This document shows positions 11,325-33,237 of a stretch of 33,237 nt of DNA, piece by piece. Source of the DNA: Octopus bimaculoides (lineage: Eukaryota). Location of the stretch: NCBI RefSeq assembly GCF_001194135.2, contig NC_068989.1:31895462-31928698 (forward strand). Direction: 5' to 3'. Each line of letters starts with the position of its first letter. Positions within the stretch are counted from its first letter, which is position 1. The notes below the pieces were generated by a model. That model saw only the letters and a list, made by a program, of their open reading frames with translations. It searched no databases and had not been told where the DNA came from. The position numbers and the translations under genes were made by a program.

Positions 11325-12424
11325 ATGGGTTAAGAAAAACGAGCATTTTCGACACCTCCTTTTTGCTTTTAATCAAGGTTCTAAGGCCGCAAAAGCTGCT
11401 CACAACATTTGTGCTGTGTATGGAGAGGGTGCCATAGCTGAAAGAACCGCTCGTGATTGGTATGCCAAGTTCAAAAATGGAAATTTTGACCTCAAAGACG
11501 CATCTCGTTCTGGCCGTCAAGTTGAGTTCTATGATAAACGATTAAACCAACTTTTGCACAAAAATTCTCGTCAAACGACAAGAGAACTGGCAGAGAAAAT
11601 GGAATACTCCCACACTGCTATAGAGAAGCATCTTCACTCGATGGGAAAGGTTCAGAAGTATGGAGCATGGGTTCTGCATGCTTTCAGTGACAACAGCAAA
11701 AATCAACGAGCCACAATCTCCGCTGGTTTGCTTGCTCGTCACCGCTCAACTTATAGTCACAAGTAATGATTTCTTTACCAAATCGTTACTGGCAACGAAG
11801 AATGGTGCCTGTACATCAATATGAAGCAGCATAACGAATGGCTTAGCCCTGGTAAACAAGTGATACTACGTGTGAAACAAGAACTTCATCCGCGTAAAAT
11901 GATGTTGTGCGTATGGTGGGACTGGGAAGGGATTATCCATTACGAATTGCTTGAACGGAATCAAACGGTCAACGCAGAACTCTATGTTCAACAGACGGAA
12001 TGACACAACACGGCTGTTCAAGAGAAAAATCGGCAGCATGGAGTTCTGCTGCACGACAACGCCCACCCTCATATCGCCAATATGACCAAGGAAGCCATTC
12101 AAACACATGGCTGGGAGTGCTGCCACACCCGCCGAACTCTCTTGATTTGGCACCAACGGATTTCCACCTCTTTCGATCACTTTCAAATGCTATGCACGGA
12201 ATTTCGTTCAATGCTGATGCAGAATTGAGAGCTTGGTTGGATAAATTTTCAAGTCGAAATCGGGTGGTTACTACCAACGAGGTATTGAAAATCTTGTTGA
12301 ACATTGGGAAGAAGTTGTAAACAACAAGGGTGAATACATTATTGATTAATTAGTTGTCAGTTTTTATTAGAATTTTTTTTAATTTAAATTTTTTTAAATG
12401 GCGGGAACTTAGTTGCCACCCCAA
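11325..12424 (+). mobile_element. mariner (DD34D) transposon, pseudogenised, 5' TIR missing
   Basis: HTH region (ERTARDWYAKFKNGNFDL), WVLH (WVPHEL-like), IVTGNEEW, KMMLCVWWDWEGII, LHDNAHPH and LPHPPNSLDLAPTDFHLFRSL. Stops and frameshifts are present. The 3' TIR GGCGGGAACTTAGTTGCCACCCCAA is followed by TA. Confidence 0.95.
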
Positions 12425-12929
12425 TACATATATACATATACTTATTTATATACATATATACACATACATATATAAATACATATACATATATATACATAAT
12501 TACATACAAATATGTATATACATATATACATATAATAATATAAATAATATATATGCACATATATGTACATACATCTATACGTATATATATNNNNNNNNNN
12601 NNNNNNNNNNNNNNNNNNNNNNNNNNNNNNNNNNNNNNNNNNNNNNNNNNNNNNNNNNNNNNNNNNNNNNNNNNNNNNNNNNNNNNNNNNNNNNNNNNNN
12701 NNNNNNNNNNNNATATTTGTATATTTAGATCTCTATCAAATATTTGGTAAAAATATTGTACCTGTTATCAACGTAGCAAAATTCTCATATGAAAGATTGT
12801 TTATCATACAATTTTGTGTGCATATCAGTTTAAATAAGAGCTATAACGTGATCCATCGTAAAAACTTGTTTAATGACCTATGTACATTTCAATGCAATAT
12901 CCCGACTCACTCTTGTCTGTGATAAAAAA

Positions 12930-13498
12930 TGGGATCTTGCATCTCTTCAGGGTCTATACTCCTTCAAAGCCCCAAGATGAAAACTCTGATTGAAAAAAAC
13001 ACCTTACGGAATAGCAGACGCCAACCAAAAAACCTTAAAAAACACCTCAGAAGGGCAAAAGTCAGATCAGAGACTAAACCAGAATTCATAGTAAAAGAAT
13101 GCGGTGATAGGAGATGTGGAACGTGTAACAATACCAACAACTACAAATACATAGAAAGTGGTTCCCACATAAAGTTCAAGAACGGATCTAATTTTAAAAT
13201 AAATGCAGATATGAACTCCAAAACACAAAATCTCATATACTGCATCACCTGTCCAAACTGTAAAGAAAATTACATTGGCGAAACGAATAACTCACTCTGC
13301 CAACGTGCAAGAATTCACAGGCAACATATCCGACAAGAAGAACTAAGAATGATTCCATTGAGTAAACATCTGGAAGTATGCGGAAACGGAAAGTTCAAAA
13401 TACTTCACTTTTATAAATGTACACGTTACGATCCACAATACCGAAAGGCAATGGAACTACACTTCATCAAAAAATTTTCCCCGAAGTTAAATGTTTGA
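12930..13498 (+). mobile_element. Neptune-type PLE 3' fragment: Cys linker plus GIY-YIG endonuclease, open reading frame
   Basis: RRQPKNLKKHL..KECGDRRCGTC..NLIYCITCPNCKENYIGET..RARIHRQHI..LSKH..MELHFIKKFSPKLNV*. Confidence 0.88.
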
Positions 13499-14722: not shown

Positions 14723-15975
14723 GGGTTGGACAAAATAATGGAAACACCTAGTATCATAACATCATAATTTTGAAATATCTATAAAGCCGTCAAAAGCTTG
14801 TTTATTTTTGTGCTTTTTTGATTTATTATTAGTGTTGCTTAATATGTTTTGCTAAAATTGCTATTTCTTTTCAGATATCATCAGAAGAAGGTAATTAAAA
14901 TTCATTAAAATGACAGATCTATCAGACTTTCAAAGAGGTCAAATTGTTGGTGCTCTTATTGTAGGCACTAGCGTAATAAAAACAGCCGAAATGTTTGGTG
15001 TGTCAAGAAACACTATCTTGAAAGTAATGACAGCCTTTGAGAAAGAGGGAAAAACCTCCTCATGGCAACAAAACTCCGGAAGAAAACCAAAACTTTCAGA
15101 TAGGGACCGTCAGACTCTTACGCGAATTGTTAGAAAGGATCACAAAATTACTGCAGAGCTTAATGAACACCTCGAGAACCCAGTTTCCACAAAAACTGTT
15201 CGCCGGGAGCTGGACAAAGCCAGATTTCACGGGAGGGCTGCGATCAGAAAACCACTGCTTTCAAAAACAAACGTTGCAAAGCGTTTAGAGTGGTGTAAAA
15301 ACCTACAGAATTGGTCCCTAGAGCAGTGGGATAATGTTATTTTCTCGGATGAATAAACCTTTACCTTATTTCCGACCACTGGCCGAGTATACTTGTGGAG
15401 ACAGCCAAAAGAAGCATTTGACCCAGACTGCCTTCTTCCAACTGTTAAACATGGAGGGGGATCTGTTATGACCTGGCGGGGCTATATCTTGAAAATCCAC
15501 CGGCTCAATGTTTTCCCTTCATGGCAGAATTAACAGTCAAGACTAAGCATTTTATCCGATCAAAGTCATCCTATGGTTGCGGAACTGTTTCCTGGGGGAA
15601 ACGCAATCTTTCAGGATGCTAATGCACCAATTCACACAGCTAAAGTTGTTACTGAATGGCACGAGGAACATTCTAGTGAAGTTGAACATCTTATCTGGCC
15701 AGCACAGTCCCCAGATCTCAAACTTATTGAACATTTAATGGTGCATTGTAGAAAAACAAGTAAGGAGTCGATATCCTCCACCATCATCACTATAAGAACT
15801 GGAGACTGTTTTAGCTGAAGAATGGACAAAAATTCCTTTGGAAACAATTCAAACTTTGTACGAGTCCATACCTCATAGAATTCAAGCTGTAATTACTGCC
15901 AAAGCGGTCCTACCCCATATTAAAATATATTTGTTCGAAATTTTAAGGTGTTTCCATTATTTTGTCCAACCCCTG
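14720..15975 (+). mobile_element. Full-length Tc1-like (DD34E) transposon, pseudogenised
   Basis: About 30-bp TIRs: CAAGGGTTGGACAAAATAATGGAAACACCT and AGGTGTTTCCATTATTTTGTCCAACCCCTG followed by TA. The transposase starts at 14910 (GRKPKL, RKPLLS, VIFSDE, KHGGGSVM, FQDANAPIH, WPAQSPDLKLIEHL) and has a stop at 15354-15356 plus frameshifts. Confidence 0.95.
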
Positions 15976-28232: not shown

Positions 28233-29420
28233 ATGTATCATCCCATAAGTTCTGTCCGAAATTTGAATAAAGAAAACAAGTGATCAAATGTTATATTTAA
28301 TTGAAATTTAATCATCAATGTTCTTTCCCTGATTATCTATGACTTCCTTCCATCTACTTACAAGCTTTTTAGTCCCATCAATGTAAAACTCTTTTGGTTT
28401 CAAAGCGAAGAACACGAAAATGTCAGTTTCGACCTCCTCCTGCCTTGCGAAAGTTATGTCCCCCAAATGATTCTGTAAACTTCGAAACAAATGGTAGTCT
28501 GAAGAAGNNNNNNNNNNNNNNNNNNNNNNNNNNNNNNNNNNNNNNNNNNNNNNNNNNNNNNNNNNNNNNNNNNNNNNNNNNNNNNNNNNNNNNNNNNNNN
28601 NNNNNNNNNNNNNNNNNNNNNNNNNNNNNNNNNNNNNNNNNNNNNNNNNNNNNNNNNNNNNNNNNNNNNNNNNNNNNNNNNNNNNNNNNNNNNNNNNNNN
28701 NNNNNNNNNNNNNNNNNNNNNNNNNNNATGAAGTTCCCTTCTCGGTTGTAGTTGAGCTTTTTCCCTTTTACCAAGCCACTGTTTACGACGTTTAACATTT
28801 CGATAGAAGATCCCTTTTTCGTCACCAGTCATAAGTCTATCCAAAAAGGGTGAAATGAGTTCGCGACAATGGAGAGAAGAGCAGATGTCAACTCGGCATT
28901 TGCGGTTGCTTTCGGACAATTCATGTGGCACCCATTTTCCAAGTTTAGGAATCTTTCCAAGTTGTTGAAGATGACGATGAACAGTTGTATGGTTTGAACT
29001 AAACTTTATTGCCAATTCTTCAACTGATAATGCGCCTCATCAAACTCAACTGGACGTACTGTTTGATCTTCATCTTCAAGGCTGAAATCTCCACTTCTGA
29101 ATTTTGCAAACCATCTTCTGCAAGTTCTTTCATTCAAGCATCCTTTCCCATAAACTGAGTAGATGTATCGAGCAGAGTTTCCTTTTTTGTACTCATAAAG
29201 CATTATGTGCCTTAAATGCTCTTTGGATACTTCCGTGTTAGAAAGGGTTTTAATCAAAGAAACTTTAATTCTATTATGCAGTAAAATAATATTTAATTAG
29301 TTTAAATGTACACAAATGCATAAAAATAATTTTTAATTCCATTAGACATTCTAAAATACGATTAAATTTCATTCAATTTTAAAAAAGGTAAAATCGGACA
29401 CAACTTATGGGATGACCTGA
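28233..29420 (-). mobile_element. mariner (DD34D) transposon, near full length, pseudogenised
   Basis: TIR core TCATCCCATAAGTT.TGTCCGA at both ends, with TA flanks. HLRHIMLYEY..RRWFAKFRSGDFSL, GKWVPHELS, LMTGDEK and SDYHLFRSLQNHL..RWKEVIDNQG. Confidence 0.93.
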
Positions 29421-30350: not shown

Positions 30351-30990
30351 ATGTATTAAATGATGACACTCACATCAAGAGAAGTTTTAAAGTTTTTTTT
30401 ATTTATAATTAATGATAAAATATGATTCCTATGTTTATAAAATTTTCATTACTTTAACAAAATTGAACTGTCTCATAATATAAACAATTCATCTTCAACT
30501 CGAATTTTACAATCAGATTCAAATGTAAAAACATAGCCCAAAACACACGGTCTGTAACCATTGTACTACAGTAATTTTTTGGCTGATAATGGAATGAATA
30601 CTTGAATATCCATCAACATTTTAGTAACCAATACTCAGTAATTCTCATTTTATCCACAATATTACCTTTGCCATGGATACTATTTTTGTTCGTTTATACT
30701 TTATATTACAAATGACCAAAAAAGGACTGTATTGGTAACTGAGAAGGTGAATATTGGGAAATGTGCCACCAGCCAGGTGATAATCTCATTCTTGTTTCAG
30801 GTTTAAACAAGAGAGATCCAGTGTCAATCAGCTTCCACAAAACATCGTTATTCTCAGAAGTATTGTATAGAATTCAATTACATTCCTCTAGGAATGTATA
30901 TCAAGCATCAATTGCTTCTACTTGGATTTTATATCTTATCATAAAAACCATATAATGTTGTTCTCAGAGTTCATCTTGATGGTTCTTTCT

Positions 30991-31110
30991 TCATGGATGT
31001 GGTTCCACTTTAACATGAATACCTTGAGCCTTTAGATCCATAACCATTGACAACAGTTTTTGCTGTAACTGCCTTAGATATTCATTCTTGGTTGTCAGTT
31101 CTTCCAGCAC
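30991..31110 (-). CDS. Last coding exon of a bZIP transcription factor (leucine zipper)
   Basis: TTACAG| acceptor, phase 0. Reads VLEELTTKNEYLRQLQQKLLSMVMDLKAQGIHVKVEPHP*, with Leu at positions 5, 12, 19 and 26 and Asn at an a position. Confidence 0.85.
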   Translation of the reverse strand: MLEELTTKNEYLRQLQQKLLSMVMDLKAQGIHVKVEPHP

Positions 31111-31644
31111 CTGTAATATAAAAGAAAATTGTTAGAAATAACCCATTGTTACTTATTCATATTGAGTTTAGTTTTTTTTCTTATTTTTTATTTTTTTCAG
31201 TGAGTTGATTGAAATTTTTTATCACCAGGTCTGGCACTTGAAATTAACAAAATCTTCATTAATTAAAGTAAGAGACAGTTGGCTAATTACAGTGGAATGT
31301 TAACAATGAAATACAAACCTCTTATCTCATAATTTGAAACATTCTCAATTCAACCACCTGTGTATACACTGATTAACTGTGTAAACTCCAAATTCCAAAA
31401 GGTTTTCACTTTGCTTCTATATAACTCTAGATATTTTGGAAACGGCTCATATCACACCAAAACGTATTAACAACATATATAAAGCAAAATAGAGGGCATA
31501 TTTACTTTATATTTATGAATCCCTTGGGTTAGAGAAAATTGCATTTTGAAATACAAAAGCTGGTTCATTTTGTTAAAAGCTTCTTAAATACATCGTAATA
31601 AATAATATAACCATTTCAATTTACAACAAATTCTATTCACTGAC

Positions 31645-31752
31645 CTTTTCATCTTCAAATTTCTTCATCCTTTGTTTATCACGATATTTCTTGGCAGCAA
31701 CTTTATTTCTATTCTTCATTTCATTTCTTCGTTGTATTTCTGTGGGAGACAT
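31645..31752 (-). CDS. 108-bp phase-0 exon encoding a bZIP basic region (Fos/ATF3/BATF-like)
   Basis: TTCAG| acceptor and AAG|GTCAGT donor. Reads MSPTEIQRRNEMKNRNKVAAKKYRDKQRMKKFEDEK with the invariant N-x7-R, and splices in frame to 31110. Confidence 0.88.
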
Positions 31753-31932
31753 CTGAACATATAAAAAAGAAATAAAGGAGATAAAAAAAAATTTGAATAA
31801 CATCAAACTGTTGTTGTGATAAATATTCTTGCTCCCATACACACACACNNNNNNNNNNNNNNNNNNNNNNNNNNNNNNNNNNNNNNNNNNNNNNNNNNNN
31901 NNNNNNNNNNNNNNNNNNNNNNNNNNNNNNNN

Positions 31933-31966
<34 letters not shown>

Positions 31967-32045
31967 AATAATAAGGGTGAAAAATTGAATATTAATTTGA
32001 TTAATATCAATTTAAAACCAGAAAAATCTAAAGAGTCAGAAAAAT

Positions 32046-32259
32046 TATATTACATACATATAAGAGGGATGACAACTAAGTGGACATCCATTATACTAGA
32101 AGAAGACCACCTATGGTCTGACCACTAAGAAAAGATTGTTCTCAAGAAAATTCAGCAAATGCCGTAAGTGAGCATTTCCTTAGTAGTCAGATCATAGGTG
32201 GTCTTCTAGCATAATGGATGTCCACTTAGTGGTCATCCCTTTTATACGTATGTAATATA
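32046..32259. mobile_element. MITE-like long inverted repeat (about 82-bp arms, about 50-bp spacer)
   Basis: 32046-32129 is the reverse complement of 32179-32259 with about 6 substitutions and one 3-bp indel (core TAAGTGGACATCCATTAT.CTAGAAGA..CCACCTATG.TCTGAC). Confidence 0.8.
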
Positions 32260-32964
32260 CATACATACATATATATATCTGTTTACAAATATATACATGT
32301 AGTTATATATAAATACATCATGTATATATATATACACACATATATATACACACACATAAACACAGTTTTACACACATTCATATATACAAATATATAGATA
32401 TATATATAGCAGCTGTGCATTGTTAACCAGTTAGGAGATGTCCTCTTGGGGTTAAAACATTGCAGTAGAGTCTGCTTGAACGGATGGTCATGTTAAAGTG
32501 GCTACAAATATATATAAATACATACATTGTTGATATCATAAGAATTTATAAACTTTTGAGAGAACATTAATCATTTTTTGTTTTTCTTTTTGGAACTGAA
32601 TCTCACTGTATATATATTAAGATATAAATAATAGCATGTAAATATTAGGTTGAAAAACCCTTTTGAATAAAATAAAAGGCTGTCTGTGAGACTTGAACCC
32701 ACAACTCTTGTGTATGTGTGTATGTATGTATGTATGTATGTATTCGGGTGAGTGGGCAAACAAAAGAAAGAGGCACTCAGCTCATTTAGTTGGAGTTACA
32801 TACATTAATATTTAAAATAGTTTGATTTGGTCTTATGCGAGTTTTGTAGGCTTCTTTCAGAAATGAAGCTCGTCGAACTCAAATTAGCCAAATTCTGTAA
32901 GGAACTATAAAACTTTAAGACACATAAGGTCGAAATCAAACTGTTTTAAAGAACAACAACAACA

Positions 32965-33103
32965 ATAATAATAATCCTTTCTAGTAAAGGCTCAAAGCCT
33001 GAAATTTCGAGGGGAGGGGACTAGTCAATTACATCGACACCAGTGTTTCACTGGTACTTAATTTTTGACCGTGAAAGGATGGAAGGCGAAGTCGACCCTG
33101 GCG

Positions 33104-33106
<3 letters not shown>
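32965..33106 (-). mobile_element. SINE family E, 3' part, abutting (AAT)n
   Basis: Minus strand ATTCCGCCAGGGTCGACTTCGCCTTCCATCCTTTCACGGTCAAAAATTAAGTACCAG..CACTGGTGTCGATGTAATTGACT aligns with 26950-27050. Confidence 0.75.

Positions 33107-33182
<76 letters not shown>
33107..33182. repeat. (AAT)n followed by (GT)n microsatellite
   Basis: Seen directly in the sequence. It is followed by about 35 nt resembling the start of the SINE-A 3' half. Confidence 0.9.
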
Positions 33183-33184
<2 letters not shown>

Positions 33185-33237
33185 ATGTTTGTCCACCACC
33201 GTTTGACAACTGGGATTGGTTTGTCAACCTCTTTAAA

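Follow-up and report, generated by a model that had tools for sequence, protein, structure and literature searches.

A conserved three-exon bZIP gene of octopods with Fos-type exon borders and an ATF3-like N-terminal motif

We analyzed a stretch of 33,237 nucleotides (nt) from Octopus bimaculoides (contig NC_068989.1, positions 31,895,462 to 31,928,698 of the forward strand; hereafter the window), the minus strand of which carries two exons encoding a basic leucine zipper (bZIP) domain. These exons belong to LOC106880978, whose product is an ‘uncharacterized protein’ of 153 amino acids (aa) in RefSeq (XP_014786646.1), with a 197-aa variant in UniProt named ‘BZIP domain-containing protein’ (A0A0L8FV31). 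Our results show that this is a real and conserved gene of three coding exons, whose 153-aa bZIP product probably derives from the Fos/ATF3 stock and is probably closest to ATF3/JDP2.

Coding exon 2 (31645..31752, minus strand) is 108 bp long, comprises 36 codons with phase 0 at both ends, and is identical to residues 79-114 of XP_014786646.1. It translates as MSPTEIQRRNEMKNRNKVAAKKYRDKQRMKKFEDEK, is directly preceded by tttcttttttatatgttcAG (a polypyrimidine tract and AG) and followed by GTcagt, and covers the basic region from codon -15 to codon +20, where the invariant Asn is numbered 0. A GT...AG intron of 534 bp (intron 2; 31111..31644, minus strand) separates it from coding exon 3 (30991..31110, minus strand; 120 bp, 39 codons plus a TGA stop), which encodes the leucine zipper and a short tail. 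Exon 3 translates as VLEELTTKNEYLRQLQQKLLSMVMDLKAQGIHVKVEPHP before the stop, with ttttcttttatattacAG directly upstream. Both junctions are in phase 0, giving a spliced bZIP domain of 75 aa. An earlier sequence-only reading of this DNA had the exon coordinates, the residues, the canonical splice sites and the phase-0 join exactly right. The first AATAAA past the stop lies 588 nt after it (30398..30403, minus strand) and is a candidate polyadenylation signal by consensus match only.

Coding exon 1 lies outside the window. In the O. bimaculoides genomic locus L001 (GCA_001194135.2, CM046609.1) it occupies positions 10001-10234, consists of 78 codons (MEDETN...PEYK) and ends at a GTatgt donor, while exons 2 (36 codons) and 3 (39 codons and stop) occupy L001 12857-12964 and 13499-13618, equivalent to window 31752-31645 and 31110-30991. 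Window position 33237 corresponds to L001 11372 and abuts a gap of 1,015 N (L001 10357-11371) inside intron 1; because the window stops at this gap, exon 1, which sits some 1.1-1.4 kb past the window end, is absent from it, and intron 1 is in part unsequenced. What the window does hold is the 3' part of intron 1 (31753..33237, minus strand), with the acceptor tract (31753-31772), an assembly gap (31848-31931), microsatellites and an inverted repeat resembling a miniature inverted-repeat transposable element (MITE; 32046-32259). The assembly gap is flanked by (GT)n and (TA)n and lies 96 nt upstream of exon 2.

The gene had been described from the window as hidden and as having two exons; both descriptions are artefacts of the window limits and of the open reading frame (ORF) track. 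Exon 2 sits inside a 125-aa ORF that crosses the N gap and exon 3 forms a separate 39-aa GTG ORF, so that the domain is only partly visible in the ORF list. The gene was hidden only from this prokaryote-style list, as XP_014786646.1 and A0A0L8FV31 already use the junction. The 197-aa model begins at an in-frame ATG in an extra upstream exon (L001 ~8607-8654), whose GTaagg donor joins an acceptor at 9916/9917, 84 nt before the RefSeq ATG (L001 9917-10000). The O. vulgaris and Argonauta gene models both begin MED/MEN. The additional exon may provide an alternative start and is probably a leader exon, as is exon A of ATF3. A tblastn search with the protein found no tandem paralogues within 10 kb on each side of the O. 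bimaculoides locus.

An exhaustive phmmer search with the spliced 75 aa against 1.84 billion representative proteins gave two matches, P0001 (153 aa, equal to XP_014786646.1) with 100% identity over residues 79-153, and P0002 (161 aa, Argonauta hians) with 58% identity. A further orthologue, P0004 of O. vulgaris (154 aa, 86% identity), emerged from a profile search; RefSeq annotates it as ‘cyclic AMP-dependent transcription factor ATF-3-like’. The spliced domain also matched Pfam bZIP_2 with 29.4 bits (gathering score 22.3, E = 8.6e-7), which, with the full match to a database protein, confirms the bZIP domain. Among 15 billion proteins, orthologues were found only in octopods (Octopus and Argonauta), in keeping with the earlier claim that the gene is lineage-specific; a 75-aa query needs about 45 bits for significance and the Argonauta match reached 46.6 bits, so distant orthologues, for instance in squid or Nautilus, could be missed. 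The gene itself was therefore already known from RefSeq and UniProt, and its O. vulgaris orthologue was already called ATF-3-like. In the literature, no paper found named LOC106880978, LOC115216710 or XP_014786646, and a preprint on octopus immediate-early genes does not mention bZIP genes. New here are the basis for its placement (exon borders together with an N-terminal motif), an inventory of the invariant positions at which it departs from the bZIP consensus, and the finding that the basic region is frozen while the zipper evolves freely.

We compared the gene at the loci of O. bimaculoides (L001), O. vulgaris (L002) and Argonauta hians (L003). Exon 2 is exactly 108 bp in all three species; exon 1 is 234 bp in both Octopus species and 243 bp in Argonauta, and exon 3 is 120, 123 and 135 bp, respectively. 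Every junction in the three loci is in phase 0 and flanked by AG/GT. The two Octopus species have an intron 2 of equal length (534 bp, 94.7% identical), and that of Argonauta measures 390 bp. This shared three-exon layout with its 108-bp exon is far beyond chance. The sequence-only reading had looked to related cephalopods for orthologues with the same exon borders, and O. vulgaris and A. hians supply them.

The borders of exon 2 are those of Fos genes. Metagenome contigs scanned with a Fos and ATF3 domain alignment yielded 80 loci, and in at least 20 genomic Fos loci AG stood right before codon -15 and GT right after codon +20, with stops or junk in the flanks. Both borders were seen in L007, L013, L021, L036, L040, L042, L046, L051, L054-L057, L059-L062, L064 and L065, and in the invertebrate-type Fos loci L069, L071 and L078; the exon of L007 is identical to that of human FOS. 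Octopod exon 2 shares the -15/+20 borders and opens with M-S-P-x-E, compared with L-S-P-E-E in Fos. The earlier statements that this is the 108-bp, phase-0 exon of Fos genes and that it aligns to Fos and ATF3 without gaps both hold. Some Fos loci of invertebrates or tunicates (L005/6, L009, L011, L014, L020) retain the -15 acceptor and have no +20 intron, as does the arthropod ATF3-like genomic locus L072, so the intron between basic region and zipper has been lost repeatedly. The scan recovered no genomic locus of vertebrate ATF3, JDP2 or BATF. That ATF3, JDP2 and BATF genes themselves have the +20 intron is presumed, as is the absence of both introns from C/EBP and ATF4 genes, and this is a caveat for an ATF3/JDP2 placement. 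Exon C of ATF3 is 108 bp and encodes residues 81-116, and the ATF3 exons have about 80, 36 and 65 codons. A four-exon ATF3 gene encoding 181 aa (PMC7457002) is consistent with these sizes.

Upstream of the basic-region exon the octopod proteins carry a motif that is otherwise found in ATF3. A single BLASTP comparison of P0001 with human ATF3 (E = 8e-5) gave one alignment, which runs from LLPMIKLELRSKLQLKR in the octopus protein and LTPFVKEELRFAIQNKH in ATF3 into the basic region. The human ATF3 sequence was checked against the immunogen given in PMC6795555 and against a mammalian ATF3 complementary DNA, L045. In the metagenome scan L045 and 11 ATF3-like transcripts of planktonic arthropods (L032, L044, L048, L049, L052, L058, L063, L066, L073, L082 and L083) all had the block 18-35 residues upstream of the basic-region exon. 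The motif reads NLTPFVKEELRFAIQNKHL in the mammal, S-Q-F-I-K-E-G-L-K-M-K-V-K-Q-K or L-I-K-E-G-L-K-L-T-I-Q-S-K-R in the arthropods, SLLPMIKLELRSKLQLKRH in Octopus and NTLPLIKLQLKTKVELNRH in Argonauta. Its general form is phi-(I/V)-K-x-E-L-(R/K)-x-x-phi-Q-x-K, represented by LTPFVKEELRFAIQNK in mammals, FIKEGLKMKVKQK in arthropods and LLPMIKLELRSKLQLKR in octopus, and the form tested, phi-(I/V)-K-x-x-L-(K/R)-x-x-phi-(Q/K)-x-K, was present upstream of the basic-region exon in octopods. Among the arthropods the block [FL][IV]KEGLK.K[VI].QK was strongly conserved, at the position of mammalian LTPFVKEELRFAIQNK.

For quantification, an ungapped, group-weighted profile of 23 columns was built from the 11 arthropod transcripts and mammalian ATF3. 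Its best window was the homologous site in all three octopods, and 3, 7 and 11 of 20,000 shuffles reached the respective scores (P = 1.5e-4 to 5.5e-4). Fos N-termini scored 0 or less with the same profile.

The residues of the domain were compared with 124 labelled bZIP domains taken from the supplement of Jindrich and Degnan 2016 (PMC4736632), with a few obvious labels corrected; they come from human, amphioxus, sea urchin, Lottia, Capitella, Daphnia and fly and were aligned without gaps on the invariant Asn. The octopod signature NKVAAKKYR fits N-x2-A-A-x2-(C/S/Y)-R, and Asn 0 and Arg +8, found in 100% of the references, are both present. In the zipper, Leu occupies the d positions +25, +32, +39 and +46, and Asn the a position +29. 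Position +7 is Tyr in all three octopods, as in 4% of the references, which are the ATF4 family and one unclassified Lottia protein only. Position -4 is Met (K/R in 94% of the references), position +11 is Gln or Met (K/R in 84%), and +18, where the zipper has its first d position, carries Asp, Asn or Ile (Leu in 62%; C/EBP also has no Leu there). The replacement of the KCR cysteine by Tyr and that of the first zipper Leu, both noted from the sequence alone, thus stand up against the reference set. The accompanying statement that several basic residues are non-basic is borne out by Met -4 and was otherwise overstated, the net charge of the basic region being an average +8 (reference mean 8.1). 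DNA binding is plausible, because this charge equals the reference mean.

The redox-sensitive Cys +7 (basic-region position 19) stands out by its conservation across the ATF3 and Fos families (PMC1479340), and it was present in all 6 ATF3 and all 9 Fos references. Taken together, that paper and the reference set place Cys at +7 in ATF3, Fos, Jun, CREB and Maf, Ser in BATF, C/EBP and PAR, and Tyr only in ATF4. C-terminal to the zipper, every full Fos- or ATF3-like ORF recovered had an HxPxC motif (AHRPMC, HSPNC, HEPNC or HRPTC). The octopod proteins stop about 10 residues past a zipper of four heptads, with C-terminal ends ...KAQGIHVKVEPHP or ...EEQEIKMELSP.

AlphaFold2, run on the three-sequence alignment, predicted a continuous helix over residues 81-142 with a predicted local distance difference test score (pLDDT) above 90, spanning the exon junction, and, with lower confidence, a second helix (residues 29-62) in which the N-terminal motif lies. 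The sole charged g-e' pair in the central heptads of all three species was Lys+28 with Arg/Lys+33, and its neighbors were hydrophobic or polar.

Conservation differs sharply along the protein. The basic region, EIQRRNEMKNRNK(V/I)AAKKYRDK, is unchanged between Octopus and Argonauta despite a synonymous divergence (dS) of about 1.1, and exon 2 with some 20 nt on each side is the sole DNA block that aligns between the 23-kb loci of the two genera (77.8% over 135 nt, E = 8e-24; L001 12837-12970 and L003 13867-14001), which makes it a remarkably well-defined island of constraint. Between O. bimaculoides and O. vulgaris the overall ratio of nonsynonymous to synonymous rates (omega) was 0.46. Exon 1 was under purifying selection (omega 0.11, P = 2e-5), and exon 2 had an omega of 0.8 from 1 synonymous and 4 nonsynonymous changes, all at its 3' end. 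The zipper exon (window 30991-31110 compared with L002 13344-13466) had an omega of 4.4, from 1.2 synonymous and 16.8 nonsynonymous changes. Its nonsynonymous rate was higher than the divergence of the adjacent intron (P = 6e-5) and was not above pooled dS or the locus-wide noncoding divergence of about 14% (P = 0.14 to 0.32). The zipper surface thus evolves at about the neutral rate or faster, which hints that the dimer interface is under adaptive or relaxed evolution. For the zipper, positive selection was not demonstrated, as the omega of 4.4 rests on only 1.2 synonymous changes (Fisher P = 0.06). The coiled-coil core was retained, with L, N, Q/Y/L and V/L at the a positions and L/E, L, L/M and L at the d positions. 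Upstream of exon 1, no CRE (cyclic AMP response element), AP-1, CARE (C/EBP-ATF response element), C/EBP or SRE (serum response element) motif was conserved across the three species.

The exons, their junctions, their conservation, the family-level architecture and the selection pattern are direct observations, whereas DNA binding, partner choice, a repressor role and any stress inducibility are inferred. The octopod protein is alike to ATF3 and JDP2 in its small size (153 aa, compared with 181 in ATF3 and 163 in JDP2), in an N-terminal exon of about 80 codons that carries the motif, followed by a 108-bp basic-region exon and then a zipper exon, and in an NK(V/I)AA core with Asn at the a position of heptad 2. 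It differs in having Met -4 and Gln/Met +11 in place of Lys/Arg and, beyond that, in features that tell against the placement. Tyr replaces the family-invariant Cys +7, Asp, Asn or Ile replaces Leu +18, and HxPxC is absent after the four-heptad zipper in all three octopod proteins. The boundaries of the motif block were chosen after inspecting the sequences, a HMMER local profile of the N-terminal block gave no signal in octopods, and in Argonauta the best pairwise match to the ATF3 motif was another stretch, NLDPFVKQ. Pfam bZIP_1, which covers Fos and ATF3, gave 16.6 bits, below its gathering score of 27.6. A phmmer search of PDB placed C/EBP beta and alpha at the top (E ~4e-4), then GCN4 and then an ATF4 chain, 1ci6_A (E = 0.73), and up to an E-value of 10 it returned no Fos, ATF3 or BATF chain.

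Profile scores were low throughout, which counts in the same direction. Hidden Markov models (HMMs) of 17 families, made from the reference set, assigned 110 of 113 domains correctly in leave-one-out tests, with a median of 90 bits and a minimum of 23 for the own family. The octopod domains reached at most 22 bits with every family HMM. For O. bimaculoides the scores were 19.9 bits with C/EBP, 17.2 with ATF3, 13.0 with BATF and 7.1 with Fos; for O. vulgaris, 18.9 with C/EBP, 18.4 with PAR and 16.4 with ATF3; and for Argonauta, 21.6 with ATF3, 18.4 with PAR, 17.6 with ATF4 and 14.5 with C/EBP. Across the three species the ranges were 7-10 bits for Fos, 12-14.4 for BATF, 13.8-17.6 for ATF4 and 14.5-19.9 for C/EBP, and the ATF3 scores of 16-22 bits were far from those of family members at about 90. 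In pairwise BLOSUM scores, the Argonauta domain was closest to human ATF3, fly ATF3 and JDP2, and the basic regions of both O. bimaculoides and Argonauta were closest to human ATF3.

An assignment to C/EBP from its nominal top rank was rejected, as all sequence tests were indecisive and no family HMM scored above 22 bits. The sequence of the domain alone cannot place the family; the gene architecture and the N-terminal motif place the gene where the domain sequence does not. Since the defining sequence features of ATF3 were looked for and not found, we file the protein as an ATF3-like derivative of the Fos/ATF3 stock and not as a bona fide ATF3 member. The earlier observation is thus confirmed and its interpretation partly supported: of the proposed Fos/ATF3/BATF type, the exon borders bear the assignment out, while tests on sequence alone favor bZIP_2 and C/EBP, with the Fos HMM among the worst. 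The gene may be a paralogue, as proposed, and its DNA specificity, dimer choice or redox control may be altered.

Unclassified bZIPs of other Lophotrochozoa came up in the same comparisons. Two from Capitella (221193 and 195977) scored 50-65 bits with the ATF3 HMM, several Capitella proteins scored as ATF3- or BATF-like, and an unclassified bZIP of Lottia gigantea (233905) has Tyr at +7 (NKLSAQAYR). Because of these proteins, lophotrochozoan relatives of the Fos/ATF3 stock exist, and Lophotrochozoa may hold unrecognized genes of the ATF3 stock that bridge to the octopod protein.

The alternative that survives best, although we regard it as unlikely, is that the gene split off from the Fos/ATF3/BATF stock as an orphan that has no particular link to ATF3/JDP2, perhaps as a truncated duplicate of Fos or BATF, and that its N-terminal likeness to ATF3 arose by chance or convergence. 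Such an origin would fit exon borders that are common to Fos genes generally, the tiny margins between the ATF3, BATF and Fos HMM scores of O. bimaculoides, the silence of the HMMER motif profile, the better ATF3 match elsewhere in Argonauta, and the joint lack of HxPxC and Cys +7. The Fos family (FOS, FOSB, FOSL1/2 and invertebrate Fos) does share with the octopod protein the exon borders, the (L/M)-S-P-x-E opening and the gapless alignment; the octopod protein is without the acidic zipper, the long C-terminal transactivation region, Cys +7 and HRPxC of that family, and its Fos scores are the lowest range given above. BATF is likewise a small, mostly-bZIP protein with three coding exons, no Cys +7 and a likely obligate heterodimer role. 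HxPxC also follows the BATF zipper. The Ser +7, the NRIAAQ(K/R)SR core, the very short first exon and the HEPLC after the zipper of BATF are not found in the octopod protein. What sets the ATF3/JDP2 reading above this origin is that the ungapped ATF3-motif profile matches the homologous site in all three species, with Fos N-termini at 0 or less, that the BLASTP alignment to ATF3 covers motif and basic region, that the NKVAA core and the best basic-region matches favor ATF3/JDP2, and that exons of 78, 36 and 39 codons parallel those of ATF3 in the sizes given above.

It is more improbable still that the protein is a C/EBP- or ATF4-related bZIP of the bZIP_2 class whose introns came to lie at Fos positions by chance. 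C/EBP is the best nominal match, with its HMM first for both Octopus species, its beta and alpha chains first in PDB, and bZIP_2 the only Pfam model above threshold. RDK at +8 to +10, Met +13, the lack of Leu +18 and the zipper start (V/L)LE-LT-xN-E-L (here VLE-LT-KNE-L) are also C/EBP-like. The C/EBP signature N-N-x-A-V-(R/K)-K-S-R is nevertheless missing, its Asn +1, Val +4 and Ser +7 being replaced by Lys, Ala and Tyr, and scores of 14-20 bits are far under the leave-one-out scores of true members. The likeness is gone in the Argonauta orthologue, which prefers ATF3 (21.6 against 14.5 bits) and whose zipper is not C/EBP-like. Because likeness to C/EBP or ATF4 is confined to the fast-evolving zipper of Octopus, we take that to C/EBP as shallow and lineage-specific. 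Vertebrate C/EBP genes are not known to have introns within the bZIP, nor is the bZIP of ATF4 known to span more than one exon; the octopod bZIP is split by two introns at Fos positions, both borders matching the Fos-type exon, and is preceded by the ATF3-type motif. ATF4/ATF5 are alike in the five base-contacting residues N-A-A-Y-R, including Tyr +7 (KKYR in octopods, RYR in ATF4), which is found in 5 of 5 ATF4-family references and is otherwise diagnostic of, and restricted in metazoans to, ATF4 (PMC1479340). The octopod protein is far smaller than ATF4/ATF5, has the ATF3-type motif and Fos-type exons, and scored no more than 17.6 bits with the ATF4 HMM.

A decaying pseudogene or an annotation artefact, which the near-neutral zipper exon (16.8 nonsynonymous against 1.2 synonymous changes) and a surrounding window of almost nothing except transposon debris might suggest, is very unlikely, because frames and splice sites are intact in three species at a dS above 1 to Argonauta, exon 1 is under purifying selection, the basic region is invariant with exon 2 as the only conserved DNA block, and the a/d core positions are kept despite the turnover of the surface.

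If the protein is an ATF3/JDP2-like derivative, it would dimerize as a coiled coil of four heptads and bind DNA through a basic region in which the base-contacting Asn, Ala-Ala and Arg are retained. By analogy with ATF3, JDP2 and BATF, it would most likely act as a small modulator or repressor of the targets of other bZIP partners, mainly as a heterodimer; its small size and the retained ATF3 N-terminal block point to this role. The repulsion of Lys+28 and Arg/Lys+33 in a homodimer suggests a heterodimer partner with acidic g/e residues. Because the residues that contact bases (N, A, A, Y, R) are the same as in ATF4, a half-site of the CRE/CARE type is a reasonable guess. With Tyr in place of Cys +7, redox control by way of this residue is impossible; Tyr +7, Met -4 and Gln/Met +11 together probably end such control and may shift half-site preference toward the ATF4 type.

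A more specific proposal is tentative, and we regard it as rather unlikely: that an ATF3/JDP2 stress factor was rewired in the octopod lineage into a derivative of its own, which has kept the N-terminal cofactor motif and the ancestral exons, fixed the ATF4-type Tyr, lost the near-universal phosphate-contacting basic residues at -4 and +11, and has a zipper surface turning over at or above the neutral rate. Were this so, the protein would be a natural hybrid in which an ATF3 scaffold reads half-sites in the manner of ATF4, has no redox switch and changes its choice of partner between species, and it could point to a branch of the stress or immediate-early network that is peculiar to cephalopods. 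Should Tyr +7, Met -4 and Gln +11 alter regulation or the preferred half-site, the gene would offer a natural experiment on how an AP-1/ATF factor is re-tuned, and it might be a cephalopod-specific node in transcription dependent on stress, injury or activity. For annotation, an ‘uncharacterized protein’ of O. bimaculoides and Argonauta becomes a divergent ATF3-like bZIP with Fos architecture. The gene is also a clean case in which introns and flanking motifs classify a factor whose DNA-binding domain has drifted beyond profiles. Its importance is modest, and the understanding of bZIP proteins is unchanged by it.

Elsewhere the window consists mostly of transposon relics, and the bZIP exons were the only host-gene sequence recognized. 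Transposon-relic ORFs lie at 352-591(-), 2585-3076(-), 11416-11766(+), 12929-13498(+), 14910-15818(+) and 29006-29257(-). The relics include GIY-YIG endonuclease ORFs of Penelope-like retroelements and Mos1/mariner HTH_48 fragments, as well as a Tc1-type pair of HTH_Tnp_Tc3_2 and DDE_3 and a DDE_1 fragment. The MITE-like inverted repeat in intron 1 has two arms of 63 nt (32046-32108 and 32197-32259) that are 90% complementary and lie 88 nt apart.

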